Virus record (IMG/VR): IMGVR_UViG_3300048591_000147
Coordinates: 1-64,000 of that record
Reading direction: 5' to 3' (one strand)
Length of the DNA: 64,000 nucleotides
Shown here: piece by piece, positions 131-55,054 of the stretch
Layout of the letters: each line of letters begins with the position of its first letter
Position numbering within the stretch: position 1 is the stretch's first letter
Notes under the pieces: generated by a model
The model's database searches: none
What the model was told of the DNA's origin: nothing
The model's input: the letters and a program-made list of their open reading frames with translations, nothing else
Made by a program: the position numbers and the translations under genes

Positions 131-773
131 TATATCGATTACGCCTACAATTACGCCTACAGAGACTGTGACACCTACAGTAACTCCAACCACTTCGTCT
201 ACGTCCAATGACATTATATTTGATATTGTCCAAACGGTTGGATTAGATTTAAGCAACGCAAACAGAACCGCAACAGTGTCAAATCCGGCATGGTGGGAAT
301 GTCTTTCATATTGTAATAAATTAGTGGATGCGACTGATAGTAATTATATTGAAATAGAATGCACAGTGGTGGATGCAGCGGCGGGTCATATCATGGTGGG
401 CATTGGCAGTGATTACACGTTGGCGTTTCCACACAACTCACCAAATTCATATATGTATTACGCGCATGGGTCTATATGGAATGGGGGTAGTTCATCGTCA
501 TATGGTAGTTCATGGTTATCCGTGGGAACTCACAACATAGGCATATTACTGAAAAATGGTAAATTGTATTTTAGGGTGGATGGGGTTTGGCAAAATAGTG
601 CTGATGTAGACTCTGAAACCGGGTTCGCATTCTCTGGTTTGACTGGTTCGTTTAACGTATTGTTTAGCGTATCTGGAGACACAGATCCAAATGCATATGG
701 TACATTGAATAATACGTCAGGTCTTCTGGTTTATTCATTACCTACTGGCGCTTCCGTCTGGGGGCAGCTATAA
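3..773 (+). CDS. 5'-partial Pro/Thr-repeat virion protein with C-terminal SPRY/ConA-like beta-sandwich
   Basis: Frame open from nt 3 through VTPT repeats into ORF 168..773; C-terminal pattern YIEIEC..IMVGIG..YMYYAHG..YG..IGILL..GKLYFRVDG resembles SPRY domains. Confidence 0.65.
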   Translation, partial: TPTVTPTVTPTVTPTVTPTVTPTVTPTVTPTVTPTVTPTVTPTISITPTITPTETVTPTVTPTTSSTSNDIIFDIVQTVGLDLSNANRTATVSNPAWWECLSYCNKLVDATDSNYIEIECTVVDAAAGHIMVGIGSDYTLAFPHNSPNSYMYYAHGSIWNGGSSSSYGSSWLSVGTHNIGILLKNGKLYFRVDGVWQNSADVDSETGFAFSGLTGSFNVLFSVSGDTDPNAYGTLNNTSGLLVYSLPTGASVWGQL

Positions 774-833: not shown

Positions 834-1370
834 ATGGCTGACAGTAAAATCTCTGATTTACCATTAAGGGATGCATTAACAGGCGCGGAACAGTTCCCGC
901 TCGATCAGGGCTTAGTGACTGTGAAAGCATCGTTGGATGATGTTAAACAGTATTGTAATACTATACTAACTTTAACTGATGGTACTTGGTCTGGGATATT
1001 CTCAGAATATGGAATTCTAGGCGAAGCAGTGGCATTCGGTGAATTAATTTATCTAAGTGCTGCTGATAGTAAATGGTATAAAGCTGATGCAACAACAGCC
1101 GCTACATCTGGTGATGTAAAAGTTGGTGTATGTGTTGTAGGTGGGGTTTTGGATGCGGTTACAACGATATTATATATTGGTAGTATACGCGCAGACGCAC
1201 TGTTCCCAACATTTACCATTTCTGGCCCAGTAATGATATCAGAAACTCCGGGTGAAATGACACAAACCGCGCCAGTCACGAGCAATTCTGTGACAAGACG
1301 AATAGGATTCGCTAGCACCGCTAATGAAGTCCTGATAAATATCAGTAACGATTATTACACGCACATATAA
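834..1370 (+). CDS. Putative virion structural/decoration protein
   Basis: MADSKISDLP start typical of phage fibre proteins; C-terminus (TAPVT..RRIGF..EVLINI) similar to C-terminus of 14905..15858. Confidence 0.5.
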   Translation: MADSKISDLPLRDALTGAEQFPLDQGLVTVKASLDDVKQYCNTILTLTDGTWSGIFSEYGILGEAVAFGELIYLSAADSKWYKADATTAATSGDVKVGVCVVGGVLDAVTTILYIGSIRADALFPTFTISGPVMISETPGEMTQTAPVTSNSVTRRIGFASTANEVLINISNDYYTHI

Positions 1371-7816: not shown

Positions 7817-9777
7817 AGTGGGGTAAATTTATGCCAAGGTCTTATATTTATGCCACAATATGCGCATAGTGCGGCACCTATATCGATCTGGGTGATCATT
7901 TTATACTCATGGTATAAAGCGTCGATCATTGTTTTGGCAACATACGAGCAGCAGTATAATACCACAGGACTGTCTATTTTATTTACATTGTTCTTAAGTT
8001 CATTATAGATTCTATCATGCTCATCCCATACGTTGTTGTTGGTAACAATATGAGTGAATTTAAAATATTTTGTCATCTTGCTCAGGTATTGAGGTCCAAC
8101 TATTATTATATTTCTTTTCTTGAATTGATCGAAATACTTAATCAGTTCACCATTGATACTTAACTTAGCCCACAACCCACCATCAACCAATTGTAAGTCC
8201 TTCAGATATGGCGTTATGAAACTCATCATATAAGGTTTTTGTAATACTTGGGACGCTATACCAATATAATATTTTGGCTTGCTCTTTATCACTGGTAACA
8301 TCCGCTCTTCGGCATATTTTTGCCCGGATTCATTTAATGTCCAATCTTTAAAATTGTATGGTGGGTGATTGGGTGGAACGCTGCTTGAAATGCCGGAATA
8401 TGATATTTTTAACATTGGTGACCACTCACCGTCATTATATCTGGCAAATGAAAATGGTATATTATTCTCTAAGTTATTGAGAAATAATTGATTAACATCA
8501 TTCTCCAGTGTTGTTATATTTGATGGTGTTATTAAAGGAAATTTGACCGTGCAATCATTGATAGTATACACACTATCTTCCGTGAAGAACTCAGGACATA
8601 CCAAGCGATATGCTTGTAAACCATCCTTTATCTGTTTCTTAATTTGATATGCTTTAGGATCTGCTCTTGATTCTAGATAATCAAATATTTTTTGTTGCTG
8701 CACGCCATAATCGAAACGCATAAATGAATGCGATTGAATGTTGGTAGACATTTGATGTAGCAGTTTACGATCAGCTTCTAACTTTTTAATTATATTGCAT
8801 GCTCTATCGACCTCATTATTCTTTATGATGAACATCATATCAGTAGTGTATTTGAACTGATTGTTACTGTTATGGATATCAGTTGTGATTAGCACTACAC
8901 CCTGCAATGCTGCTTCTATACCAAGAGGCCAGCCGTTGAATGCATCACCAGTCTCGGCGTTTATTAGAATGTCAACATGCTTATTATAGAATTCATCGAG
9001 TTCTACTTGTGCCTTCGGACTATAATTTGTTATATTGGCATCTGGGATACAATTACCAATGGATATAAATCTCACATTTAATGATGGAAAGGTCTTTTTA
9101 AATGTCGAGGCTATTTGACGATAACTATCACTTCCCTTACTGGCATTGTGCCCCATGTTAGAGAAGCAAACCGTCAGAGTCGATCTATTTAACTTTTTTT
9201 GTTGTGGCTTTTCATCTTTGTTTAAACATGTACTACCATAGCATGAGATATAGTTAGTGAAGCCATAATTACTCAACCATTTATCAGTCTTTTCTTGTGT
9301 GGAGATTATGTTGGCTTTTTTGTTTATTTTCAATATGTCTTCTTTGCCACCTAGCCCACCACCGGGATACAGATGAATGAACTGTTTTTCGTGCGGTACT
9401 TTAGTATATTCTTTGTTAAATTTTATGTAGTTTGACAAGAAAATGTGATATATTGTCTTATATGAATCTACGTTGAATTCGGTGCCAGTGGTGAAGAGAT
9501 AACTGAATGAACTTAGCCCATTGAATTTAGTACCATCTACCATTGTATTATACTTGTTCAAATGATTATATTGTGGATCAAATATTAGAATGTTGAAACT
9601 AGACAAATTGAAATACTTGGACATCTGTTCATAATCAACGTCATATGATATGTTGGCATAGGACTGTATCTTATTGACTAATATATCACAGTTACCACGA
9701 TCTATGAATGCTTTAGTCTCAGCAATGCGCCACTTTGCGTATTTTGATGGAAACAAAATATCTACTAATAGGTTCAT
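7813..9777 (-). CDS. Two-domain glycosyltransferase (GT-B/GT4-like N-terminus plus GT-D-like C-terminus)
   Basis: SKG.D, DILIN, GWPLGIEAALQGVVLITTD GT4-like signature; FSFARYNDGEW in C-terminal domain. Confidence 0.75.
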   Translation of the reverse strand: MNLLVDILFPSKYAKWRIAETKAFIDRGNCDILVNKIQSYANISYDVDYEQMSKYFNLSSFNILIFDPQYNHLNKYNTMVDGTKFNGLSSFSYLFTTGTEFNVDSYKTIYHIFLSNYIKFNKEYTKVPHEKQFIHLYPGGGLGGKEDILKINKKANIISTQEKTDKWLSNYGFTNYISCYGSTCLNKDEKPQQKKLNRSTLTVCFSNMGHNASKGSDSYRQIASTFKKTFPSLNVRFISIGNCIPDANITNYSPKAQVELDEFYNKHVDILINAETGDAFNGWPLGIEAALQGVVLITTDIHNSNNQFKYTTDMMFIIKNNEVDRACNIIKKLEADRKLLHQMSTNIQSHSFMRFDYGVQQQKIFDYLESRADPKAYQIKKQIKDGLQAYRLVCPEFFTEDSVYTINDCTVKFPLITPSNITTLENDVNQLFLNNLENNIPFSFARYNDGEWSPMLKISYSGISSSVPPNHPPYNFKDWTLNESGQKYAEERMLPVIKSKPKYYIGIASQVLQKPYMMSFITPYLKDLQLVDGGLWAKLSINGELIKYFDQFKKRNIIIVGPQYLSKMTKYFKFTHIVTNNNVWDEHDRIYNELKNNVNKIDSPVVLYCCSYVAKTMIDALYHEYKMITQIDIGAALCAYCGINIRPWHKFTPL

Positions 9778-18182: not shown

Positions 18183-19016
18183 ATGAACATATATTACACA
18201 TACATTTACTTAGATCCAAGAATAACTGGCATATGGGAAACAACGTTTGGAGTATTTAACTATGAACCATTCTACGTTGGTAAAGGAAAAGGGCAGCGAT
18301 ATTTAGTCCACCTTAAAGGTTGGGCATATAAGTATAAAAACCCACATTTATATAATAGAATAAGTAATATCAAGTCTGATGGGTTTGAGCCAATTGTAAT
18401 GATATTAAAAAACAACATATTACAAGAGGACGCATTAGCTATTGAGGCTAAATTAATAAATGAATTGGGCACTAGAAAGAATATATCACAAATAAAACTA
18501 GGACCGTTAGTAAATCTAAAATTGGACGGGAAGGTTCAGCGATTTTCAGATGAAACCAAACAAAAAATTAGTGAATCCGCACGAACAAGAAAGAGGAAAT
18601 CACATTCAGATGAAACCAAACAAAAAATGAGACTCGCGTCTGCGAATTTCACCGAAGAACAAAGAAAACAAAAATCAGAAAGAATAAGTAAGAAAATAAA
18701 AGGTAAAAAATTGTCAGAACAGCAATGTGAGCGCTTATCCCTATTACATAAAGGTAAAAAATTATCTGATGAACAAAAAGAGAAATTACGGATAACGTCT
18801 ACTGGCCGAAAACATTCTCCCGAATCGTTATTAAAGATGTCATTATGGCAAATTAAAAAATGGAAAATAGAAAATATAAATACTGGGATTTTTATAACGG
18901 ATAATCTAGCAGATTGGTGTAAATCTAACAATATAAATTATCATACACTCTATAATACATTAAAATCTCAAAAGTTTCACAAATTACATCGGTTGGTAGA
19001 AAAAGTGGCTGATTAG
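18183..19016 (+). CDS. GIY-YIG-family homing endonuclease with NUMOD3-like repeats
   Basis: YYTYIYLDPR..PFYVGKG..R; repeated HS.ETK.K / LS.EQK.K motifs. Confidence 0.85.
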   Translation: MNIYYTYIYLDPRITGIWETTFGVFNYEPFYVGKGKGQRYLVHLKGWAYKYKNPHLYNRISNIKSDGFEPIVMILKNNILQEDALAIEAKLINELGTRKNISQIKLGPLVNLKLDGKVQRFSDETKQKISESARTRKRKSHSDETKQKMRLASANFTEEQRKQKSERISKKIKGKKLSEQQCERLSLLHKGKKLSDEQKEKLRITSTGRKHSPESLLKMSLWQIKKWKIENINTGIFITDNLADWCKSNNINYHTLYNTLKSQKFHKLHRLVEKVAD

Positions 19017-19042: not shown

Positions 19043-19954
19043 TCAGAAGGGTGGTAGTTTTTTCAATAATTCTATATAATTGTCTTTTTGAGGGTCATTA
19101 TTTTTAACCCCATCAATCCACATAGTTACCATTTCTGGAGTTGGTGGCTCAGGTTCTGGTAATTTTTCTACAGGTTCCGCAAATGGATTATATGGACAGT
19201 AGAATGCACCAGCATCTGTTTCTATTTGACATTTATACATAATTGGACCATCAATATTTTTTCTAGGTTCTTTTCTACTGAACTTCTGTTCTAGTGCCAT
19301 AATCAGATCTGTCATGTTGGCTGCGTATAGGCCCGCCGCGTTGAGCGTGTTAATTTCGACGATCTTAATACCGTCTGGCGTTTCGCAAACATCTATCACG
19401 TATGCCTCATGTGGTTGCCAGTCTCTACGATAAGAACAGCACAGGTTGTAAACGAAATTGTCAAATCGTTTATCAACGTCAGATGAGTAATGCACCGTGC
19501 CTCCACGTTTATACATGGATTTCGTTACAATTTTTCTATCTACTATCCAGTACCTATACTCCGCGTAGATTTCTTTAACAGGGCATACTTGGATTAATGT
19601 ATCACCGTTCATAGAAGAACCATAGTCATCACCCATCGTGAGAATACTATGTTGCCAATCTGTAAGCTCTTGATCCGTAAAGACTTTTCCAGCAAATACC
19701 TTGGAATCTTCAATTGGACGAAGGAATGCCGTTCCTGTTACAATCTTGGCATCAGCAAATCTCGACACAACAGCATCAGCATTGAGCATATATGAGCCCC
19801 AATGCTTCATCTGCTCATTGAAATTGACTGGCTCTAGATCGAACACACCGGGATACCAACCTTTCTTTCTTGCAATATGACGCATGGAATAAGATCCCAT
19901 GCATATTACATTAAGTAATAAATAAGAAAAAAGATTCAGTCGAATGACAATCAT
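19043..19954 (-). CDS. ATP-grasp protein (DUF4343/R2K-like), possibly N-terminally truncated
   Basis: F.RP..DSK.FAG, EYRYWIVD, YVIDV..T..G.KIVEIN..AAG.YAA. Confidence 0.7.
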   Translation of the reverse strand: MIVIRLNLFSYLLLNVICMGSYSMRHIARKKGWYPGVFDLEPVNFNEQMKHWGSYMLNADAVVSRFADAKIVTGTAFLRPIEDSKVFAGKVFTDQELTDWQHSILTMGDDYGSSMNGDTLIQVCPVKEIYAEYRYWIVDRKIVTKSMYKRGGTVHYSSDVDKRFDNFVYNLCCSYRRDWQPHEAYVIDVCETPDGIKIVEINTLNAAGLYAANMTDLIMALEQKFSRKEPRKNIDGPIMYKCQIETDAGAFYCPYNPFAEPVEKLPEPEPPTPEMVTMWIDGVKNNDPQKDNYIELLKKLPPF

Positions 19955-20008
19955 GGGTTATCTCCTTATACGATAAAACCCCCATAACCGTCGATAAACT
20001 TACTGAAT
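19934..20008 (+). ncRNA. Y-RNA-like element A (minimal)
   Basis: ATTCAGT-CGAA...CTT-ACTGAAT terminal helix with bulged C; inner ATGGGTT/AAccCCCAT stem; TTATC. Confidence 0.65.
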
Positions 20009-20736
20009 TATATGTGTCTAGGTGCCAGAATGGTATTGGGTTGCGCTGCAAACGCAAATTGCGGGGGTTCGATTCCCTCCCTAGACTCCAAATCTTTAAC
20101 CTTGGCAATCCAGTTTTTAACTTTTTGCCTTTTCATACCCAAAAGGTTGGCGACTTTGGTCACCCAACCATATTTTGTAAAATCTATACCAGATTCGTTT
20201 AGTAATGTTATACGTTCTTGCTGTGATTTAAACCACTCGTTTAAGTGAGTCGCCAACCATTCTTTTCTTTCTTTCTTCTGCGGTTTGATTAATGCCGTTT
20301 TTTTATTTTTAGAACAGTAGTTGGTAGTCTGAGTATGACAATTTGGACACAGCAATCTAAGATTTTCAAATCTGTTATCATCATTTAGACCGTTGATATG
20401 ATCTAATTGTAAAGTTAATGGTAAATTATTATGCGTTCCGGTATTTGCGCATAATGCACACGAGTAATTTGTTAATTCAATAAACCTAGCTTTGACCCTT
20501 TTTCTAGGGACTTCGCAACCTGTAGTAAATAATTCATCATCTGTGTAGTATCTCTTTAAGGCGGTCATATCTCTGCATTTAAAATGTGAAATATCTAAAT
20601 TATATTGTTTTATATATTTGGATAAGGTTCTATAACCTCCACCAGACGTTGAGTTGCAACCCATTTTTGCAATTGCTTCTCTTTTACTTAAACTATTTTG
20701 AATTATTGATTTAATTTCTTCTGCTTTTGTTTCCAT
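20008..20736 (-). CDS. HNH homing endonuclease
   Basis: CALC..LQLDHINGLNDDNRFENLRLLCPNCH; own TATAAATA box in a hairpin at 20742..20787 (minus strand). Confidence 0.9.
   Translation of the reverse strand: METKAEEIKSIIQNSLSKREAIAKMGCNSTSGGGYRTLSKYIKQYNLDISHFKCRDMTALKRYYTDDELFTTGCEVPRKRVKARFIELTNYSCALCANTGTHNNLPLTLQLDHINGLNDDNRFENLRLLCPNCHTQTTNYCSKNKKTALIKPQKKERKEWLATHLNEWFKSQQERITLLNESGIDFTKYGWVTKVANLLGMKRQKVKNWIAKVKDLESREGIEPPQFAFAAQPNTILAPRHI
20016..20090 (+). tRNA. tRNA-Cys(GCA)
   Basis: Full cloverleaf: GTCTAGG/CCTAGAC, TTGCG-CTGCAAA-CGCAA, U73, encoded CCA. Confidence 0.92.
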
Positions 20737-22523: not shown

Positions 22524-22661
22524 TGTTTAAGTCGAAAATGTAAAGGTTATCACAAACAGTCGTATGTGGGTTCGAGTCCCACCATTGCTGGAAGCAGTAA
22601 TAGTAGGCAAATTGGTTTAGCCAACCGTCAAAAACATCTTTCATTATTACTTACTTGAACA
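22524..22661 (+). ncRNA. Y-RNA-like element F with permuted tRNA domain
   Basis: TGTTTAAGT-CGAA...CTT-ACTTGAACA; T arm GTGGG-TTCGAGT-CCCAC; loop-closed acceptor ATTGCTG-GAAG-CAGTAAT; D arm GGC-AAATTGGTTTA-GCC. Confidence 0.8.
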
Positions 22662-22677
22662 TATAATTAGAATAAAA

Positions 22678-22785
22678 TTGTCAGTCGATTTGTAGAAGAT
22701 TATCTTTCGTGAAAAAGGAAATATGGGTTCGACTCCCATCTCGGGCTTGGTGCTATCAAACTCTTTTACTATAACTTATTGACAA
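22678..22785 (+). ncRNA. Y-RNA-like element G
   Basis: TTGTCAGT-CGA...CTT-ATTGACAA; T arm ATGGG-TTCGACT-CCCAT. Confidence 0.72.
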
Positions 22786-22800
22786 ACATATAAATAGAAT

Positions 22801-22881
22801 TTGTAGTCGATCTGCTAAGAATTATCTTTCAAATGGTGAAGTGGGCTAGGCCCATAATTTCTTGCTAATAACTTACTACAA
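22801..22881 (+). ncRNA. Y-RNA-like element H (minimal)
   Basis: TTGTAGT-CGA...CTT-ACTACAA; TTATC; preceded by TATAAATA at 22789. Confidence 0.7.
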
Positions 22882-22892
22882 TAATTTTGAAT

Positions 22893-23001
22893 TTATCAGT
22901 CGATAAATGATCATTATCACTCCGCCAAAACTTGGAGATTAGATGGTTCGAATCCATCACTAGCGTCGGTTCGCACTTGGTCGTTGACAACTTACTGGTA
23001 A
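22893..23001 (+). ncRNA. Y-RNA-like element I
   Basis: TTATCAGT-CGA...CTT-ACTGGTAA; T arm GATGG-TTCGAAT-CCATC. Confidence 0.72.
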
Positions 23002-23157: not shown

Positions 23158-23778
23158 ATGTATTATACGATATATCTAGTAACTAATACTATTAATGGTA
23201 ATGTTTACATAGGTAAACATCAAACGAATGATTTAAACGATGGCTATATGGGATCTGGTAAGATCCTTAAAAATGCCATTAAAAAATATGGACTTTGTAG
23301 TTTTCAAAAAACAATTTTACACATATTTGAAAACGAACAAGAGATGAATAAAAAAGAAGCAGAATTAGTAAATGAAGAGTTTATAGTACGAAAGGATACT
23401 TATAATATCTGTGTCGGTGGTTGTGGTGGATTTGGTTATATAAATAAAAATTTACCGAATGGTATGCTTGGTAAAAAGCAAACCGATTTCCAGAAACAAA
23501 GAGTGTCAGAGTGGCATGAGAAAAACAAACATCTTGTTGATAAAAACAAACACTCTGAAATGATTAAAAATGGATTGAAAAAAATGCTCAAACCTTCCGA
23601 TGGCTTTACAGGAAGGACACATACAGAAGATACCAAAAATAAAATGTGCAAGCCTAAAAATATTGGTGAAAGTAATTCACAGTTTGGTAGTATGTGGATA
23701 ACAGATGGTATAAATAGTATTAAAATAAAGAAGACAGATCTTATTCCAGAAGGATGGTATAAAGGTCGTAAAACGTGA
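23158..23778 (+). CDS. GIY-YIG homing endonuclease (Seg-like)
   Basis: TIYLVTNTING.VYIGKH..Y.GSG..LK.AIKKYG; upstream CATAAATA within hairpin 23111..23152. Confidence 0.9.
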   Translation: MYYTIYLVTNTINGNVYIGKHQTNDLNDGYMGSGKILKNAIKKYGLCSFQKTILHIFENEQEMNKKEAELVNEEFIVRKDTYNICVGGCGGFGYINKNLPNGMLGKKQTDFQKQRVSEWHEKNKHLVDKNKHSEMIKNGLKKMLKPSDGFTGRTHTEDTKNKMCKPKNIGESNSQFGSMWITDGINSIKIKKTDLIPEGWYKGRKT

Positions 23779-33437: not shown

Positions 33438-34313
33438 ATGAAAGTTTATACCGTATATAAAACCACAAACATCGTAAATAACAAATATTATATCGGCGTA
33501 CATAAGACTGCCAATCCAAATGATGATTATCTTGGTTCTGGCACCGTCTTCAAGTTAGCAATCAAAAAATACGGAAAACAAAACTTCAAAAAAGAAGTTT
33601 TGTTTGTATTTGATGATTTAAAAGACGCATATGAAAAAGAATATGAATTAGTTAATGAAGCATTTGTAAAATGTGAAGATAATTATAACTTGCACATTGG
33701 TGGGTCTGGTGGATTAGCTTTTGAATACATCAACAATGATGTTGAATTTAGAAAAGCAAAGAATAGAAAAGCCCAAGCCGCCATGATAGCTACTGGATAT
33801 TATAAAACACCAGAACATAAAGCTAAAATGTCTGAGTTAAGGAAACAAGAATATAAAGAAGGTAAAAGAGTAGTTAATCCAGAATTTCCAAATGCTTTTA
33901 AAGGAAAGAAACATTCTGAAGAAACTTTAAGAAAAATGAGTGAGTCATCGAAAGGTGTAACTGCGGGGGAGAAAAATTCGCAGTTTGGCACTAGATGGTG
34001 TAATGATGGCGTGAATAATATCAAAATATCCAAGGGTGGGGAAATTCCAGAAGGCTACCACTTGGGTAAAGTTAAACTGGCTAAAGAGCAGCGCAAGCCG
34101 CGTATAGTAAAGTCACAAAAGAAACATGATAATTATGATTTTGGTGCACCAAGAAGAAAAGCTACAATAGAAGATATTAAAATTGCATTATTAAAACATG
34201 ATAAAAACATAAACGATGCGATGGTTAGTTTAGGATATAAAGCGAATAGTTCAGGCAACTCTAGATATAGATTTGAAAAGGTGTTAAAAGCACTTGACAT
34301 CAGCACTAAATAG
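33438..34313 (+). CDS. GIY-YIG homing endonuclease (Seg-like, NUMOD3)
   Basis: TVYKTTN..NNKYYIGVH..YLGSG; KHSEET..KMS; TATAAATA at 33410. Confidence 0.9.
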   Translation: MKVYTVYKTTNIVNNKYYIGVHKTANPNDDYLGSGTVFKLAIKKYGKQNFKKEVLFVFDDLKDAYEKEYELVNEAFVKCEDNYNLHIGGSGGLAFEYINNDVEFRKAKNRKAQAAMIATGYYKTPEHKAKMSELRKQEYKEGKRVVNPEFPNAFKGKKHSEETLRKMSESSKGVTAGEKNSQFGTRWCNDGVNNIKISKGGEIPEGYHLGKVKLAKEQRKPRIVKSQKKHDNYDFGAPRRKATIEDIKIALLKHDKNINDAMVSLGYKANSSGNSRYRFEKVLKALDISTK

Positions 34314-34336: not shown

Positions 34337-34423
34337 TGGATCGTCACCCAGTGGACGAAGGTAGCGGGCTTTTAACCCGATTGCGAAAGCACAACGTGGG
34401 TTCGAATCCCACCGATCCAACCA
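34337..34423 (+). tRNA. tRNA with Lys(TTT) anticodon and long variable arm
   Basis: TGGATCG/CGATCCA, GCGGG-CTTTTAA-CCCGA, 15-nt V arm TTGCGAAAGCACAAC, CCA. Confidence 0.85.
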
Positions 34424-35366: not shown

Positions 35367-35479
35367 TGGATCGTCACCCAGTGGACGAAGGTAGCGGGCT
35401 CTTAAAATACTTTTACGAGAGTATTTTGAAACCCGATTGCGAAAGCACAACGTGGGTTCGAATCCCACCGATCCAACCA
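35367..35479 (+). tRNA. Second copy of the long-V-arm tRNA-Lys, anticodon CTT, with a 26-nt hairpin insertion in the anticodon loop
   Basis: Identical to 34337..34423 outside the anticodon loop; insert 35403..35428. Confidence 0.85.
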
Positions 35480-38009: not shown

Positions 38010-38525
38010 ATGTCACTCATTTATACTCTATTCATCATATTCGTCATCGGTTGTCTGATCTATTATTTCTTTTCTCTCAGAAATCAAAAGAGTGATTTGG
38101 ACAAGTATAAAATTGCATTGGATGAATATGACAGGCATCTAGAAGAATGCTCAAGAGCTATGGCGCAGCAATACAAGCATACGGTGACAACAATCACCAC
38201 GACTGCGGAACAACCTGCTAATACGCCTGCGAAGAAGGCTAAAAAAGCACCTACGAAGGTGTATGCGGCTAAAAGTGCTCCATACTCGTATGATCGTTCA
38301 AAATCTAATGCAAATAGCAACAACAACGCTGACAATAATATTATTCAATTCCCATATGTGCATCATGCGGTAGTTGATGACGATTCGTGCAAGACTTCAA
38401 ATTCCTCTAGACAATCCTGTGAGTCTCCTGTAGAATCATATTCTGGTTCCAGTTACTCAAGCGATAGTTCAAGTTCATCGTCTTGCGATTCTGGTGGTTC
38501 CTCATGTGGTGGCGGTGGAGATTGA
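38010..38525 (+). CDS. Membrane-anchored protein with Ser/Gly/Cys low-complexity tail
   Basis: N-terminal TM; ends SSSSSSCDSGGSSCGGGGD. Confidence 0.6.
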   Translation: MSLIYTLFIIFVIGCLIYYFFSLRNQKSDLDKYKIALDEYDRHLEECSRAMAQQYKHTVTTITTTAEQPANTPAKKAKKAPTKVYAAKSAPYSYDRSKSNANSNNNADNNIIQFPYVHHAVVDDDSCKTSNSSRQSCESPVESYSGSSYSSDSSSSSSCDSGGSSCGGGGD

Positions 38526-39180
38526 AATGTTTGACTTCGACCCCAGTGTTCGTCATTTCTTAAGCATAAGAAAGCGTCTTGGAGATGGTGGACCAGAATT
38601 TATCGCTTACCGTTATGGTAGCAGAGTTTATGGGACTGAATCATATGACTCAGACTATGATTATATCGTAGTCTCTGAAAAAGCAGAGGATGGTAAAGAA
38701 GAATATTTCTACGCTCAGCAGGATCAACTGAACGTTCATTATCATACGCCAGCACATTGGCAACAGATGGTGGACGATCATAAAATTTTCGCTTTGGAGA
38801 GTATCTTTCAATGTGAGCAATCACACCAATATAGAAAGAATTTTAAACTTGATCTAACCAAACTGCGCAAAGAGATTTCTGAAAAGTCAAATCATAGTTG
38901 GGTGAAGGCTAAGAAAAAATTACTGGTCGAACATGACTATAAGATCGGCTTGAAAAGCTTCTTCCATTCCTTTAGAATCATCATGTTCGGCTGTCAAATT
39001 GCAAGGGACGGTCACATTTATGATTATAAGATCGGGCATACCATATGGGAGCCTATCAAAGCCCTTATGCTTGAAATTAACGCGGATAACGTAGAAGAAA
39101 TCTACGCGAAATTGGTTATAGATTATAAGTGGTATCACAATAACCTCATGACAGAATTTAGGAAGTTGGCACCAAAATGA
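38494..39180 (+). CDS. Pol-beta-superfamily nucleotidyltransferase (likely start 38527)
   Basis: YGSRVYGTESYDSDYDYIVV (GS..DxD); helical C-terminus KS.FH.FRI. Confidence 0.8.
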   Translation: MVPHVVAVEIEMFDFDPSVRHFLSIRKRLGDGGPEFIAYRYGSRVYGTESYDSDYDYIVVSEKAEDGKEEYFYAQQDQLNVHYHTPAHWQQMVDDHKIFALESIFQCEQSHQYRKNFKLDLTKLRKEISEKSNHSWVKAKKKLLVEHDYKIGLKSFFHSFRIIMFGCQIARDGHIYDYKIGHTIWEPIKALMLEINADNVEEIYAKLVIDYKWYHNNLMTEFRKLAPK

Positions 39181-44854: not shown

Positions 44855-45810
44855 AATTAATTCTAAACGATAAACTAACCAAAGCTGAAAAGATATACGA
44901 ATATTCGTTGGGAGATATCATTCGGTCAAATATGACCAAGGTATTGAAACCTGATGAAAAATATCAATTCTTCTATCAGTTTCCTAAAACAAAATTACAT
45001 AATGCGGGGTTTTTGGGCTTTTTGAGCCATGCCTATTCGAATCATGTGAATGTATCTATCTCACCATACGATATCTGGATTGTGATTATTAGTGAAGTGT
45101 CCAAATTTATTGTAGATAAGCCGGAACCATTTAGAGGTTTGTTCACTGATTCTGCCGAAAAGAAAGAAATTTTAGTTCCAACGGATAGTGAATATGAGAT
45201 GCCGATGGATTTATTATCAGAGGCTTTATCGAAGAGCATTAATTTTGATGCGTCTATCCTCTTTCCAGAATTATCAATTGAGAGCGACGAAGCTGTTGGA
45301 ATGATTCAGGCTTTATTTTGTGAAATGGCGTCACCGTATTATTCGTACTCAATGTTTATGTGTGGTCTGCCAGAGATAAAAGTTCTAGGCACCGTAGACG
45401 ATTGGAAAAATATTAGCACGAACTTTGATAAGCTTTTCGAATTACTTGGCAAGTGCTATAATTTTAAGAATTATCCGGTAAGAGTTAAAATAATTCTAGA
45501 CAATATAGTTAACTCATTTGAATCTAGTATGGCGGATAGAATTTCTTTTTGGAAGGACATTTTCACACAAAAGAACGTTGGATCTGGTGGTCAATTAGAG
45601 GTAAACGGTTGGATTACTCATTTCCTAATTGTACAGGAAAAGCCACTAAAGCTTGAAAACTTTACCAACACCATTGGTTATGTCAGATATAAAAATGTGT
45701 CATCTGGTAATAGCTATATAAGTGTTCACGGCGGGTTCGATTACGATCTTGACGAGGAAGACTTTGCGGTGCTAAGATACTCTAAGTACATAGCGATGAA
45801 GCAGCCATGA
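44851..45810 (+). CDS. DUF4419-like protein
   Basis: AYSNH..V.ISP.DIW.VI, YYSY.MF.CGLPEI...GTVDDW, GWI..F. Confidence 0.7.
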   Translation: MKLILNDKLTKAEKIYEYSLGDIIRSNMTKVLKPDEKYQFFYQFPKTKLHNAGFLGFLSHAYSNHVNVSISPYDIWIVIISEVSKFIVDKPEPFRGLFTDSAEKKEILVPTDSEYEMPMDLLSEALSKSINFDASILFPELSIESDEAVGMIQALFCEMASPYYSYSMFMCGLPEIKVLGTVDDWKNISTNFDKLFELLGKCYNFKNYPVRVKIILDNIVNSFESSMADRISFWKDIFTQKNVGSGGQLEVNGWITHFLIVQEKPLKLENFTNTIGYVRYKNVSSGNSYISVHGGFDYDLDEEDFAVLRYSKYIAMKQP

Positions 45811-47536: not shown

Positions 47537-48187
47537 ATGTTTTATACGGTTTATAAAATAACAAACATAAAAAATAATATGGTTTATGTAGGTGTCCATA
47601 AAACACTTGATTTAAATGATAATTATTTTGGGTCTGGACAGTATCTACGTGCCGCTATCAAAAAGTATGGAATATCAATCTTCACAAAGAAGATATTAGC
47701 AGTATTTGATACTCCCGAAGAAATGTTTAACATGGAGCGAAAAATAGTAACTGAGGAATTTGTAAAATCTAAAAATACGTATAACCTTGGAATAGGTGGG
47801 TCTGGTGGTAATAGAGTAGGTAAAGATCATCATACCCATTCGCTCTCCAATATGACAAGCATGTCAGAAAAAGCAAAGGCATCTTGGAATGATGTGACTT
47901 CAAGGGGGGAGAGGGTGAAAAAGTTAGCTACCAGAAATAGTAAGCTACATAAAATTGGCATACTTAAAAGACCTGATTGGACAGGCAGAAAACATAAAGA
48001 AAGTACAAAGCAGAAAATTTCTGAGAAAAATTCTAAAAATAGAACTGGTGAAGCAAACCATAGATTTGGTAAATGCTGGATAACAGATGGTACGATAAAT
48101 CGATCCGTATGTAAGGAAGCGGAATTACCAGATGGTTGGAGATATGGTAGAGTAATGAAAACGAACATAGTTGACAACACTAAATAA
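47537..48187 (+). CDS. GIY-YIG homing endonuclease (Seg-like)
   Basis: TVYKITNIKNNMVYVGVH..YFGSG; KHKESTK.KIS; CATAAATA upstream. Confidence 0.9.
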   Translation: MFYTVYKITNIKNNMVYVGVHKTLDLNDNYFGSGQYLRAAIKKYGISIFTKKILAVFDTPEEMFNMERKIVTEEFVKSKNTYNLGIGGSGGNRVGKDHHTHSLSNMTSMSEKAKASWNDVTSRGERVKKLATRNSKLHKIGILKRPDWTGRKHKESTKQKISEKNSKNRTGEANHRFGKCWITDGTINRSVCKEAELPDGWRYGRVMKTNIVDNTK

Positions 48188-48212
48188 GTTGTGTATGATA
48201 CAAAATAAAAAT

Positions 48213-48315
48213 GGGAACCTCGTATAAAGTGTGAGCAAGTGCATTAACCTCACATTTGGAATTATGGACAGCGTAATAACTGTCAGATTATGGTTCGAAT
48301 CCATGGGTCCCGCCA
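48213..48315 (+). ncRNA. tRNA-like RNA: acceptor stem, T arm and CCA with two non-canonical internal hairpins
   Basis: GGGAACC/GGGTCCC-G-CCA; ATGG-TTCGAAT-CCAT; TGTGAG/CTCACA; GACAG-8nt-CTGTC. Confidence 0.6.
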
Positions 48316-48335
48316 AAGTATAAATAAAGTAATAT

Positions 48336-48411
48336 GGGTTATTAGTGTAATCAGGCCGCACGCGAGTCTCCAAAACTCTTAGTCTGGGTTCAAATCCTAG
48401 ATAGCCCGCCA
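48336..48411 (+). tRNA. tRNA-Trp(CCA)
   Basis: GGGTTAT/ATAGCCC, CTCCAAA loop, G73, CCA. Confidence 0.88.
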
Positions 48412-48433
48412 TATAATGTAATAAAAGATAAGT

Positions 48434-48512
48434 GAGCGGTTGGCGGAACGGTAGACGCAGATGGCCTAAAAAACTGTCTCCTTAGTGGTTCGAATCCACT
48501 ACAGGCTCACCA
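48434..48512 (+). pseudogene. Degenerate Leu-like tRNA
   Basis: Leu-type D arm GCG-GAACGGTAGA-CGC, T arm and CCA, but 9-nt anticodon loop CCTAAAAAA, mismatched acceptor, no long V arm. Confidence 0.5.
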
Positions 48513-48531
48513 GAATAATGTAATAGTATAA

Positions 48532-48653
48532 TGGCATGTAGCTTAGAGGCAGAGCGAGTGACTGTGGAAGGAAACGTCAAGGCGTTGATCAGTTCGAATC
48601 TGATAACTTCAAAAGTAATCACTAGGTCGTAGGTTCGATCCCTACCTTGCCAG
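48532..48653 (+). tRNA. tRNA (Asn-like body) interrupted by a 50-nt structured insert in the anticodon loop
   Basis: AGTGA-CTGT[48566..48615]TAA-TCACT; G73; removing 50 nt gives a standard 72-nt tRNA-Asn(GTT). Confidence 0.8.
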
Positions 48654-48667
48654 CATAAAATTTAAAT

Positions 48668-48806
48668 GTCTCTTTGGCCGAGTGGACTATGGCAACAGGC
48701 TGTGGGTGTAAGAGTAAAGGCTCTGATCAGTTCGAATCTGAAATCACCGAAAGTAACCTGTCAGATGAAAATCTAATCACTGGTTCGAATCCAGTAGGGG
48801 ACTCCA
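48668..48806 (+). tRNA. Long-V-arm tRNA interrupted by a homologous 50-nt insert
   Basis: ACAGG-CTGT[48704..48753]TAA-CCTGT; 17-nt V arm; U73; CCA. Confidence 0.78.
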
Positions 48807-48861
48807 ATATTTTTTAGGACACGACATACATAAATAACATGTATATACAGAGTGTCCTAAA

Positions 48862-49767
48862 ATGAAAAATAACATAACAAACGATATTGAGCTTTTCAAG
48901 CAGATAGTTCTTAAAAGTAAGAGCATAAGACAGGTTTTAAAATTTTTTAACATCTCATCAAATTCTGCTAGATATTTTACAGCCTTCCATGATCTCGTTA
49001 AATTATATGACATTGATATAAATCATTTCATTGCTTATAAAAGACTAATTGTACCAACAGACTTCGATTGGGGGCGGGTTAACTCTATAAAAGATGCCGC
49101 AGAACAATTAAAATTGATCGAACCGGAAGCCAAGCTATGTTCAACGTGGTATGGAAAAATTAAACAATACATTAACAATAATAATGTTGATGTGTCACAC
49201 TTCAACTACAATGGCAGATATAGAAATTTAAATAGAAGATATAATCATGATGATATCTTCATAGAAGACTCCATGGTATCTAAACAAACATTAAAGGCAA
49301 GATATTCAGCGCTGCGTTCAGACAATATCAGATGTGATATGAGCGATTGCATCATATCCGATAATTGGTTAGGTCGTCAGATCACATTACATCTGGACCA
49401 TATTGATGGTAATAATAGAAATAATTGTTTAACAAATTTACGCTTCTTGTGCCCGAACTGTCACAGCCAAACGTCCACATATGCTGGAAGAAACTTAAAG
49501 TTACACTCTAAAAAGCCAGAATATAAAAGAAAATACGTACCAAAACCAAAAAAGCAAAAAACTGAAAATATTATACCGCGTGAGAAGTACAAAAGGCCAG
49601 AACAGTTCACCGTAGATAAAGATGCGTTACAATCATTGATCATGACTAATTCCATGGTGGAGGTTGCAAAACTCTTCAAAGTGTCGGATAATGCGATTAG
49701 AAAGAGATGCAAGAAATTGGGCATTGATTTGTCGCTTTCTAAAAATAAAAGGACTTCAAAAATATGA
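48862..49767 (+). CDS. HNH homing endonuclease with C-terminal HTH
   Basis: LHLDHIDGNNRNNCLTNLRFLCPNCH; SMVEVAKLFKVSDNAIRKRC; late box within 11-bp hairpin 48812..48862. Confidence 0.9.
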   Translation: MKNNITNDIELFKQIVLKSKSIRQVLKFFNISSNSARYFTAFHDLVKLYDIDINHFIAYKRLIVPTDFDWGRVNSIKDAAEQLKLIEPEAKLCSTWYGKIKQYINNNNVDVSHFNYNGRYRNLNRRYNHDDIFIEDSMVSKQTLKARYSALRSDNIRCDMSDCIISDNWLGRQITLHLDHIDGNNRNNCLTNLRFLCPNCHSQTSTYAGRNLKLHSKKPEYKRKYVPKPKKQKTENIIPREKYKRPEQFTVDKDALQSLIMTNSMVEVAKLFKVSDNAIRKRCKKLGIDLSLSKNKRTSKI

Positions 49768-54979: not shown

Positions 54980-55054
54980 GCCCATTTAGCTCAGAGAAAG
55001 AGCAGCGATAGCGTATAGCGGCGAGCGCGGGTTCAAGTCCCGTAGTGGGCTCCA
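54980..55054 (+). pseudogene. tRNA-like gene with intact acceptor/D/T arms and CCA but an unpaired anticodon arm
   Basis: GCCCATT/AGTGGGC-T-CCA; GCTC/GAGC; GCGGG-TTCAAGT-CCCGT. Confidence 0.6.

Follow-up and report, generated by a model that had tools for sequence, protein, structure and literature searches.

Compact tRNA-like inserts within the anticodon of giant-phage tRNA genes

Introduction

Bacteria are thought to splice tRNA only through self-splicing group I introns, which need a catalytic core of about 200 nt or more. A 64,000-nt stretch (positions 1 to 64,000, hereafter the window) of the 315-kb phage contig IMGVR_UViG_3300048591_000147 contains two neighboring tRNA genes that are each split inside the anticodon by an insert of only 50 nt, folded like the top half of a tRNA. 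This raises the question of whether such genes are real and functional, and if so how inserts far too small for group I chemistry could be removed. A first-pass annotation of the sequence described them as a tRNA inside a tRNA and inferred a new tRNA intron class, possibly excised by host tRNA end-processing RNases and religated, or alternatively an unspliced decoy shielding GUN anticodons from anticodon nucleases. The observation itself is confirmed by the present analysis, whereas its interpretation is only partly supported.

Two interrupted tRNA genes in the window

Both genes lie on the plus strand. The Rfam tRNA model (RF00005, gathering threshold 29 bits) matches 48532-48653 with 50.2 bits and 48668-48803 with 36.1 bits, and in both matches a 53-nt insertion is placed at the anticodon loop. 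Exactly 50 extra bases lie between anticodon positions 35 and 36, flanked by CTGT and TAA inside an anticodon stem (AGTGA/TCACT and ACAGG/CCTGT), and neither gene has a contiguous 7-nt anticodon loop. ARAGORN without introns finds neither gene, whereas with its intron option it calls both tRNA-Asn(gtt) with a 50-nt intron, as i(35,50) and i(37,50), respectively. Joining the flanks also gives tRNA-Asn(gtt) in both.

The first tRNA is an Asn-like, class I body. Its 5' exon (48532-48565) comprises the acceptor 5' strand, D arm, anticodon stem 5' strand and loop bases C32 U33 G34 U35; its 3' exon (48616-48653) comprises U36 A37 A38, the anticodon stem 3' strand, variable loop, T arm and acceptor 3' strand, ending at G73 without an encoded CCA. 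U1-A72 and G73 are as in bacterial tRNA-Asn. The second tRNA (48668-48806) is a class II body with a long variable arm. Its 5' exon (48668-48703) also ends in C32 U33 G34 U35, and its 3' exon (48754-48806) comprises U36 A37 A38, the stem, a 17-nt variable arm, the T arm, the acceptor, U73 and an encoded CCA.

Insert 1 (48566-48615) consists of a closing stem P1 (48567-48570/48607-48610), a D-arm-like hairpin P2 (48573-48577/48582-48586), a T-arm-like hairpin (48588-48592/48600-48604) with loop TTCGAAT (48593-48599) and the tail AAAAG (48611-48615). Insert 2 (48704-48753) has P1 at 48705-48708/48745-48748, P2 at 48711-48715/48720-48724, a T-arm-like hairpin at 48727-48730/48738-48741 with its loop at 48731-48737, and the tail GAAAG (48749-48753). 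The inserts align without gaps, with 37 of 50 positions identical, and 8 of the 13 differences form 4 compensatory pairs (GAAG/CTTC versus GGTG/CACC; AACGT/GCGTT versus AGAGT/GCTCT). RNAfold gives the same three-way junction for both. The shared 18-mer TGATCAGTTCGAATCTGA occurs exactly twice in the window. An assembly artefact, which the first-pass annotation had named as a possible refutation, is ruled out, since an independent metagenome contig (L260) carries the second tRNA with the same insert and only 3 substitutions.

Relatives in other giant phages

Pattern scans and a covariance model built from relatives (R1) revealed that the inserts are not unique. R1 scores both window copies 65.5 bits (E about 1e-16) and finds nothing else in the window. 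At least 10 distinct in-loop relatives of 45-59 nt were found in jumbo-phage and metagenome contigs, namely (with contig labels) L031/L213, L067/L236, L087 (Agrobacterium phage Atu_ph07), L267/L215/L254/L256, L257 (two, Asn and Lys), L258 (two, class II GUU and Lys), L260 and Salicola phage SCTP-2. All sit at 35/36 of NUU-anticodon tRNAs (Asn GUU, Lys UUU). Two are in cultured phages, Atu_ph07 with Agrobacterium C58 and SCTP-2 with Salicola, so that the mechanism is accessible to direct test. In addition, free-standing copies with the same AAAAGTAA tail lie directly after intronless tRNA-Asn genes in three tRNA arrays (L228, L230, L237), and the element may therefore have a role of its own. 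A MAFFT alignment that added the free-standing copies put the closing stem in different columns for different subtypes and was left out of the model.

Other searches gave no further relatives. An exact 18-mer scan of IMG/VR returned only the source contig plus ordinary tRNA T arms, and the pattern CTGTGG...TTCGAAT...AAAGTAA gave only chance matches inside genes. Relatives of the downstream ORF were found only in the source contig, and megablast and blastn of the window region against GenBank phages found nothing beyond a tRNA-Trp match. A scan of genome contigs used too loose a pattern, gave chance hits only, and does not bear on presence in bacterial genomes. Among Rfam families, no hit other than tRNA was obtained at E up to 10 in 48300-48900.

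Structure of the insert

In the family, a purine at +1 is followed by P1 of 4-6 bp, a purine-rich segment containing AAGG, a T-arm-like hairpin (4-5 bp, loop TTCRAWT) and the return strand of P1. The AAGG segment is either single-stranded or in a small hairpin; the D-arm-like hairpin described by the first-pass annotation is not a family feature, as most relatives have only a single-stranded AAAGG segment there. The element ends in a tail R-A-M-A-G whose last four bases face C32-U35 of the 5' exon: C32-G, U33-A and U35-A are paired, the wobble base is always mismatched, and U36-A37-A38 is left as a 3-nt bulge. RNAfold predicts the C32-G and U33-A pairs and the UAA bulge independently, and the tail base opposite the wobble base is A with G34 and C with U34.

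The closing stem and the T-arm-like hairpin covary strongly. On 9 copies, 92.9% of cells are paired against at most 52.4% with slid partners, 9 of 14 pairs have changes on both sides, and 0 of 500 shuffles reach the covariation score. This bears on the possibility that the insert is purely selfish or protective DNA, which breaks the recognition site of a homing endonuclease in genes that are tolerated pseudogenes, with RNA structure irrelevant. Presence/absence polymorphism, a sharp identity break at the site and frequent homing endonuclease ORFs beside the genes are in line with it. Nevertheless, compensatory covariation in two helices across at least 9 lineages shows selection on the RNA fold, and conservation of the exon bodies also argues against pseudogenes. 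As a stand-alone explanation it is already largely refuted by the covariation and is very unlikely, although DNA mobility is compatible with, and part of, the favored explanation.

The tRNA-inside-a-tRNA picture holds and is sharper in relatives, in which a T stem of 5, a closing stem of 6 and one mismatch (at +1) make 12 stacked layers, followed by a 4-nt 3' tail. These are the dimensions of a tRNA acceptor/T minihelix with its NCCA end. By inspection only, 12 layers and a 4-nt tail occur in the 7 short copies, in the window-type copies and in the free-standing copies, but the window copies reach 12 only if two non-canonical layers are counted, the Lys copy in L257 gives 11, and the Lys copy in L258 breaks the count with 13 nt between the T stem and P1. 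The base at -1 is U, the tail is AMAG rather than NCCA, and -1 to -4 are paired with the tail.

Boundaries and mobility

The sister contig L260 carries the intronless orthologue of the first window tRNA with loop CTGTTAA, which proves the 35/36 boundary. Identity to the window is 82% over the 56 nt upstream of the site and 96.3% over the 188 nt downstream. Removal of exactly 50 nt gives GUU, as the first-pass annotation had proposed. A 37/38 junction (His GUG or Tyr GUA), the GUG form of which that annotation had raised as an alternative, is contradicted by the intronless orthologue and by the Asn-type U1-A72/G73 bodies. For tRNA-Trp(cca), the first gene of the same cluster (48336-48411, plus strand), the reverse holds: it is intronless in the window, whereas its orthologue in L260 carries a 28-nt hairpin intron at 35/36. 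The insert is thus present or absent among close relatives at an identical site, with a recombination junction exactly at the insertion point, which is how a mobile intron behaves.

The tRNA clusters are full of free-standing homing endonuclease genes. For instance, a GIY-YIG (Seg-like) ORF lies next to the window cluster (47537-48187, plus strand; weak Pfam hits to SegE_GIY-YIG and GIY-YIG). It is a candidate driver of DNA-level spread by its position alone. GIY-YIG or HNH ORFs also lie next to interrupted tRNAs in L215, L031 and L067, and PHROGs homing-endonuclease families are abundant in the window. A sigma-70-like promoter match (TTGACA-17-TATGAT, 11/12) lies upstream of the cluster at 48171-48199 (plus strand), as a consensus match only.

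Evidence for removal of the insert

Joining the flanks gives ARAGORN tRNA-Asn(gtt) or tRNA-Lys(ttt) in 10 of 10 copies, whereas the unspliced sequences give none. Atu_ph07 was reported to have tRNAs for all amino acids except Asn and Thr (Attai et al., 2018; PMC6102473). The Asn gene is present with this insert, and a Thr(UGU) gene is present with a 33-nt hairpin insert, also at 35/36. The inserts are thus very probably removed, as inferred from gene content and conservation only, which would imply an uncharacterized way of splicing tRNA in bacteria. These results correct published tRNA inventories, because the missing Asn and Thr tRNAs are interrupted genes that standard bacterial tRNA finders skip, and suggest that phage tRNA counts, and codon-usage arguments built on them, are systematically biased.

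Alternatively, the interrupted RNAs may not be spliced but act as stable tRNA-like decoys or shields, for example against anticodon nucleases that target Asn and Lys tRNAs, or the mini-tRNA itself may be the functional product with the host tRNA only as its carrier. Hosts are restricted to NUU anticodons, which are classic targets of anticodon nucleases, the tail masks C32-U35, and free-standing copies exist. Three hosts (window tRNA 2, L260, L258) are class II bodies that would carry a GUU anticodon, which is odd for a working tRNA-Asn. Nevertheless, in Atu_ph07 the interrupted genes are exactly the two specificities otherwise missing from a near-complete set, tRNA bodies stay intact and score well, and sister phages swap between interrupted and uninterrupted versions of the same tRNA, as expected if both give the same product. 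The decoy reading, which the first-pass annotation had also offered, is therefore made less likely and is considered improbable.

A possible route of splicing

The favored explanation, held with only moderate confidence, is that the inserts belong to a family of compact intervening sequences between positions 35 and 36 of giant-phage tRNA genes whose loops read C-U-N-U|U-A-A. The anatomy of the element and its behavior at the DNA level are established by the comparisons above, and the mimicry for most copies, whereas precise removal at the RNA level to give functional tRNA-Asn or tRNA-Lys, cleavage by any enzyme and ligation are all inferred. In the preferred route, host RNase P would cut at the 5' junction (U at -1, R at +1, 12 layers from the T loop), leaving a 3'-OH, a second metal-dependent endonuclease would cut the single-stranded AG|UAA at the 3' end of the mini-tRNA, leaving a 5'-phosphate, and an ATP-dependent Rnl-type RNA ligase would seal the anticodon-loop nick. 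By inspection, the geometry of most copies would fit RNase P at the 5' junction, and RNase P cleaves acceptor/T minihelices lacking D and anticodon arms (McClain, Guerrier-Takada and Altman, 1987). However, pairing of -1 to -4 in the precursor normally disfavors or shifts RNase P cleavage, and no known bacterial endonuclease cuts precisely after a non-CCA position 76. RNase E or G is a candidate for the second cut. RNase Z, invoked together with RNase P by the first-pass annotation, does not fit the 3' junction, as at its usual site it would cut 3 nt too early and leave 3 extra bases on the 3' exon. RNase III was rejected for the T-arm type, because the stagger is 4 nt rather than 2.

Regarding the ligase, jumbo phages commonly carry Rnl1, Rnl2 or RtcB. 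XacN1, whose tail protein is the closest cultured match to the window phage (50% identical), has three Rnl2 paralogues (PMC7824862), and RNA ligases are reported among ORFs shared by AP-J-162 and Atu_ph07 (PMC11242549). No RNA ligase or RtcB appeared among the families listed for the 137 ORFs of the window, where each summary covered only the first 25 families (25 of 34 for Pfam) and the window is only a fifth of the contig. Product names in the Atu_ph07 GenBank annotation were uninformative, being almost all hypothetical protein.

The insert might instead be a small self-cleaving or self-splicing RNA, whose T-loop/AAGG core docks on the short exon-intron helix and catalyzes cleavage at one or both junctions, with exons joined by RtcB or by reversal of the reaction. 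Conserved unpaired purines sit next to both junctions (the +1/-5 mismatch, the wobble mismatch and AAAGG), the 5' exon always ends in U and the insert always in G, and the size matches known small ribozymes. Such an RNA would work in any host, which fits the spread across Alpha- and Gammaproteobacterial hosts and, as a neighboring bilin-reductase gene suggests, cyanophage-like contigs. Whereas, no hit to hammerhead, twister, pistol, hatchet, hairpin, HDV or any other Rfam ribozyme was listed at E up to 10, very little sequence is invariant apart from a generic T loop, and the region between P1 and the T arm varies freely in length and form. Two precise cuts plus ligation by 45 nt has no precedent, and this reading is unlikely.

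If a protein-dependent pathway does exist, in which a miniature tRNA top half recruits the host's own end-processing machinery and a phage Rnl-type ligase reseals the loop, it would be a third way of splicing tRNA, alongside group I self-splicing and the EndA/bulge-helix-bulge pathway. This reading is not excluded but remains doubtful.

Comparison with known systems

The closest precedent is the "enigmatic" tRNA introns of the uncultured Lak megaphages (Devoto et al., 2019; PMC6784885, Table S6), and literature searches found nothing on this element beyond that paper. Those introns also lie in anticodon loops of huge-phage tRNAs, contain a T-arm-like hairpin (GTTCGAAT or GTTCGATT) enclosed by a closing stem, so that the authors noted an intron that "may itself encode a tRNA", match no Rfam family and have intronless alleles in relatives. 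Lak phages and Atu_ph07 are placed in the same jumbo-phage group 2.2 (PMC7824862). However, Lak introns are 79-114 nt, carry an extra 5' hairpin (TACA...TGTA with an A-rich loop), and, by the present reading of the published sequences, sit at 36/37 in Tyr, Phe, Gly and Thr tRNAs and end right after a discriminator-like base. The present inserts are 45-59 nt, sit at 35/36 of NUU tRNAs, lack the 5' hairpin and end in a 4-nt tail that pairs with C32-U35. The claim of a new intron class is therefore not fully supported; the element is a compact, differently placed variant of the phenomenon reported in 2019, for which a minimal consensus, a fixed junction, an exon-intron pairing rule and cultured phage-host pairs are added here.

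Archaeal and eukaryal tRNA introns (bulge-helix-bulge, spliced by EndA endonuclease plus RtcB or Trl1 ligase) are likewise short introns in the anticodon loop, with a 4-bp exon-intron helix formed by positions 32-35 and a 3-nt bulge on the 3' strand next to the anticodon stem. In the present inserts, that helix has four layers with an internal mismatch, the second 3-nt bulge is replaced by a 1x1 mismatch, the junctions lie at the helix ends and not two bases into bulges, and the position is 35/36, not 37/38. In addition, bacteria are not known to have EndA. Group I introns in bacterial tRNA anticodon loops (cyanobacterial tRNA-Leu UAA and tRNA-fMet, Azoarcus tRNA-Ile) also interrupt the loop, sometimes within the anticodon, and are mobile with patchy distribution. 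Their 5' exon ends in U and the intron in G, which is true in all present copies but not specific to group I, and here U35 pairs with A, not with G. The insert has no match to the group I model (RF00028) and is too small for its core (P3-P9, G-binding site). Hence the first-pass annotation was right that the insert is real, conserved and structured, too small for group I and not a bulge-helix-bulge.

tRNA-like processing signals, such as RNase P minihelix substrates, mascRNA at the MALAT1 3' end, mitochondrial tRNA punctuation and tRNA-like small RNAs in the T4 tRNA cluster, use an acceptor/T-arm mimic so that tRNA end-processing enzymes cut at a defined place in a longer transcript, and the free-standing copies in tRNA arrays fit this use. 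None of these is nested inside another tRNA's anticodon loop or requires religation of the flanks. At the DNA level, collaborative homing, in which a free-standing endonuclease acts with an endonuclease-less intron that disrupts its target (cyanophage psbA with F-CphI; T4 SegB in the tRNA region), resembles the interleaving of tRNA clusters with Seg-like GIY-YIG genes and the recombination junction at the site, although a link between any particular endonuclease and this site would be inferred from proximity alone.

Besides the T-arm type, the same phage carries a second kind of interrupted tRNA at 35367-35476 (plus strand; Rfam 35.6 bits). Alignment with its intronless paralogue showed the same body as 34337-34423, but with a loop of CTCTT plus a 26-nt simple hairpin plus AA.

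Genomic context of the interrupted tRNA genes

The window covers the first 64 kb of IMGVR_UViG_3300048591_000147, a phage contig of 315 kb, and the coordinates of the two coincide. T4-type tail proteins, many small ORFs, an unusual number of homing endonucleases and at least 14 tRNA genes are encoded there. Among cultured phages, the tail-sheath stabiliser is closest to that of the Xanthomonas jumbo phage XacN1, with 50% amino-acid identity. Nearly every tRNA group in the window is followed or overlapped by a GIY-YIG or HNH homing endonuclease ORF (18183-19013, 20008-20733 on the minus strand, 23158-23775, 33438-34313 and 47537-48187), and several homing-endonuclease families with 2-4 members each were identified using PHROGs. 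A further tRNA at 54980-55051 was found by the Rfam model (40.6 bits) but not by ARAGORN. Upstream of tRNA-Ser, at 22640-23000, lie three repeated units, each with a promoter-like TTGACA...TATAAT and a conserved GTCGAT start. Two of them contain T-arm-like hairpins, and the segment 22711-22742, which has AAAGG plus a T arm, scores 11.9 bits with R1, the covariance model built for the present insert. These units may be further small tRNA-like RNAs.

The tRNA series of interest is preceded by a good sigma-70-like promoter match at 48171-48199. It starts with tRNA-Trp (48336-48411), followed by an aberrant Leu-like tRNA (about 48436-48512) and then by the two interrupted genes. The Leu-like gene possesses a D arm like that of tRNA-Leu, a good T arm and CCA, whereas its anticodon loop is of 9 nt (CCTAAAAAA) and its variable region is short. 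It scores only 16.7 bits with Rfam and is missed by ARAGORN.

Two tRNA genes carrying a 50-nt insert

The Rfam tRNA model matches 48532-48653 (50.2 bits) and 48668-48803 (36.1 bits), each with a 53-nt insertion at the anticodon loop. Both loops read CTGT, then 50 nt, then TAA. The first body is class I with U1-A72 and G73, which is the Asn type, while the second has a 17-nt variable arm, U73 and an encoded CCA. The two inserts align without gaps, and 37 of 50 positions are identical. Of the 13 differences, 8 fall in four compensatory base pairs, two in the closing stem P1 and two in the small hairpin P2. The 18-nt T-arm-like core is identical in the two inserts and occurs nowhere else in the window. 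The same three-way junction was predicted for both inserts by RNAfold, which in the full precursor also pairs C32 and U33 with the last two insert bases and leaves UAA as a bulge. Both genes are missed by ARAGORN in bacterial mode, but with introns allowed both are called tRNA-Asn(gtt) with a 50-nt intron. The observation made in the first-pass annotation is confirmed.

Relatives and consensus of the insert

Exact and near-exact searches returned only the source contig. Nevertheless, a looser pattern (AAGG, a T loop, AAAG-N-AA) revealed homologous inserts in three other IMG/VR contigs, and a metagenome scan added more. Two further copies, in tRNA-Lys genes, were then picked up by model R1. In addition, a blastn search of GenBank phages found the insert in unannotated intergenic DNA of two cultured phages, Agrobacterium phage Atu_ph07 (490 kb, identical to locus L087) and Salicola phage SCTP-2 (440 kb).

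The consensus of the commonest form (45-47 nt) reads, from 5' to 3', CTGT as the end of the 5' exon, a purine at +1, a 6-bp stem P1, (N)AAAGG followed by 5-7 unpaired bases, a 5-bp stem capped by TTCRAWT, the return strand of P1, the tail AAAAG, and TAA as the start of the 3' exon. The window copies and that of L260, a 173-kb metagenome contig closely related to the window phage, have instead a 4-bp P1 plus a small hairpin that carries the AAGG, and one Lys copy (locus L257) is built the same way. On nine copies, 92.9% of cells form standard pairs, against 28-52% when partners are slid by 1-3 columns. Nine of 14 pairs show changes on both sides, and none of 500 shuffles reaches the observed covariation, indicating that the RNA fold is under selection. 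No Rfam family other than tRNA matches.

Free-standing copies of the element lie directly after intronless tRNA-Asn genes in dense tRNA arrays at three loci, L228 (689-765, plus strand), L230 (1079-1155, minus strand) and L237 (329-406, minus strand). Each has a closing stem, an extra hairpin, AAAGG, a T arm and the tail AAAAGTAA, and is followed by about 100 nt of structured RNA and a terminator. A second mini tRNA-like element, composed of a 7-bp stem plus a T arm, lies between other tRNAs there. In two unrelated viral contigs, L001 (8149-8221, minus strand) and L006 (405-476, minus strand), a tRNA shares two strings with window insert 1, but in permuted order, namely the 18-nt T arm and a 14-nt string (GATAACTTCAAAAG). 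This is either chance or a hint about the origin of the insert. On the 35-kb viral contig L067, which carries one of the interrupted tRNA-Asn genes, a GOLLD RNA (9117-9601, 195 bits) lies among more than 15 tRNAs.

Position of the insert and exchange between phages

All host tRNAs have loops C-U-N-U | U-A-A. Eight distinct copies have GUU (Asn), of which three are on class II bodies (window tRNA 2, L260 and locus L258), and two have UUU (Lys). The insert starts with a purine and ends with G, so only a junction at 35/36 restores a 7-nt loop. Direct proof comes from L260, which carries the orthologue of window tRNA 1 without any insert, with loop CTGTTAA, followed by the orthologue of tRNA 2 with the insert. 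Identity between the two phages is 82% over the 56 nt upstream of the insertion point and 96.3% over the 188 nt downstream, and the insertion site is therefore also a recombination junction. The pattern is reciprocal, as the tRNA-Trp of L260 has a 28-nt hairpin intron that the tRNA-Trp of the window lacks. This is the behaviour of mobile introns. Free-standing GIY-YIG or HNH genes sit beside tRNA groups in the window and beside interrupted tRNAs in the contigs L215, L031 and L067, although any link between a particular endonuclease and this site is unproven. Beside the tRNA cluster of L260 lies an ORF with an IS605 OrfB/TnpB-type HTH (241-492, plus strand), and this contig has another over-long tRNA of 101 nt (1202-1302, minus strand), whose anticodon arm could not be parsed.

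Inferred removal from the RNA

Joining the flanks gives a normal tRNA-Asn(gtt) or tRNA-Lys(ttt) in all ten copies tested, while the uninterrupted reading gives none. The strongest argument for removal is provided by Atu_ph07, which was reported to have tRNAs for all amino acids except Asn and Thr (Attai et al. 2018, PMC6102473). The Asn gene is present in this phage with the insert. ARAGORN with introns also finds in this phage a Thr-type body whose loop reads TTTG, then a 33-nt hairpin, then TAA, which is anticodon UGU interrupted at 35/36. The two specificities regarded as missing from Atu_ph07 are exactly the two interrupted genes, which is hard to reconcile with pseudogenes or pure decoys. 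It is still an inference, made without RNA data.

Putative processing pathway

The sequences themselves show that the last four insert bases face C32-U35, with C32-G, U33-A and U35-A paired. The base opposite the wobble position is A when N34 is G and C when N34 is U, so the wobble base is always mismatched, and the +1 purine faces a purine. Both junctions therefore lie at the two ends of one short helix, next to a 3-nt bulge (U36 A37 A38), an arrangement that resembles half of a bulge-helix-bulge (BHB) motif but fails its definition. Counting further shows that in all seven short copies the T stem (5), P1 (6) and the +1 mismatch make 12 layers, followed by a 4-nt tail. The window-type copies (5+2+4+1) and the free-standing copies (5+1+5+1) reach the same count if non-canonical layers are included, whereas one Lys copy gives 11 and another breaks the rule. 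Twelve layers plus four unpaired bases are the dimensions of a tRNA acceptor/T minihelix with NCCA, and the AAGG segment is placed where D-loop guanines would meet the T loop.

The enzymatic steps, in contrast, are only inferred. RNase P cuts minihelices 12 bp from the T loop and prefers U at -1, so it would cut exactly at the 5' junction and leave a 3'-OH. The 3' junction (AG|UAA) corresponds to the mature 3' end of the mimic in single-stranded A/U-rich RNA. RNase Z at its usual site would cut 3 nt too early, so another endonuclease would be needed, for which RNase E or G is a candidate. Both enzymes leave 3'-OH and 5'-phosphate ends, the substrate of Rnl-type ligases, which jumbo phages often encode (PMC7824862; PMC11242549). 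No ligase was found in the 64-kb window, which covers only a fifth of the genome. An R2K-clade ATP-grasp protein (19043-19951, minus strand) and a weak Pol-beta-type nucleotidyltransferase (38494-39177, plus strand) are encoded there, and neither is an identified RNA ligase, but both classes occur in phage RNA-repair contexts. A new small ribozyme followed by RtcB, an unspliced decoy or a functional mini-tRNA remain possible alternatives.

Comparison with the introns of Lak megaphages

The closest precedent is the study of Devoto et al. (2019), in which introns in Lak megaphage tRNAs were reported and called enigmatic, no Rfam match was found, and one intron was noted that "may itself encode a tRNA". 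Their Table S6 shows that all the listed introns end in a closing stem plus a T-arm hairpin. These introns are 79-114 nt and carry an additional 5' hairpin, and by our reading they lie at 36/37, because only that junction restores the canonical Tyr, Phe and Thr loops. Lak phages and Atu_ph07 are placed in the same jumbo-phage group. The present element is therefore more compact than, and positioned differently from, these previously reported but unexplained introns, and it is not a group I intron, not a BHB intron and not a catalogued ribozyme.

Taken against this background, the interpretation offered in the first-pass annotation is supported in part. Its reading as an intron with an inner tRNA-like fold is supported and extended, the claim of a wholly new class is tempered by the Lak precedent, and the proposed enzymology is plausible for the 5' cut but unresolved for the 3' cut and the ligation. 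The finding matters because it gives a minimal consensus and cultured systems for an open problem, and because it shows that phage tRNA inventories miss interrupted genes.

Hairpin-type introns

A second intron type occurs in the same phage. Two paralogous tRNAs, at 34337-34423 and 35367-35476, have identical class II-like bodies with a long variable arm, A73 and an encoded CCA. The first has loop CTTTTAA (anticodon UUU), whereas the second has C at position 34 and a 26-nt simple hairpin inserted after the anticodon (CTCTT, the hairpin, then AA), on a body type that is unusual for Lys anticodons. In introns of this hairpin type, the last two bases of the 5' exon pair with the last two intron bases, so the two junctions are offset by 2 bp across one helix. 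That gives a 2-nt 3' overhang, the geometry left by RNase III. This arrangement is unambiguous for tRNA-Thr(UGU) of Atu_ph07 (45105-45213 of locus L275, minus strand) and tRNA-Trp(CCA) of L260 (917-1016, minus strand), both at 35/36, and is compatible with the window copy at 35367-35476.
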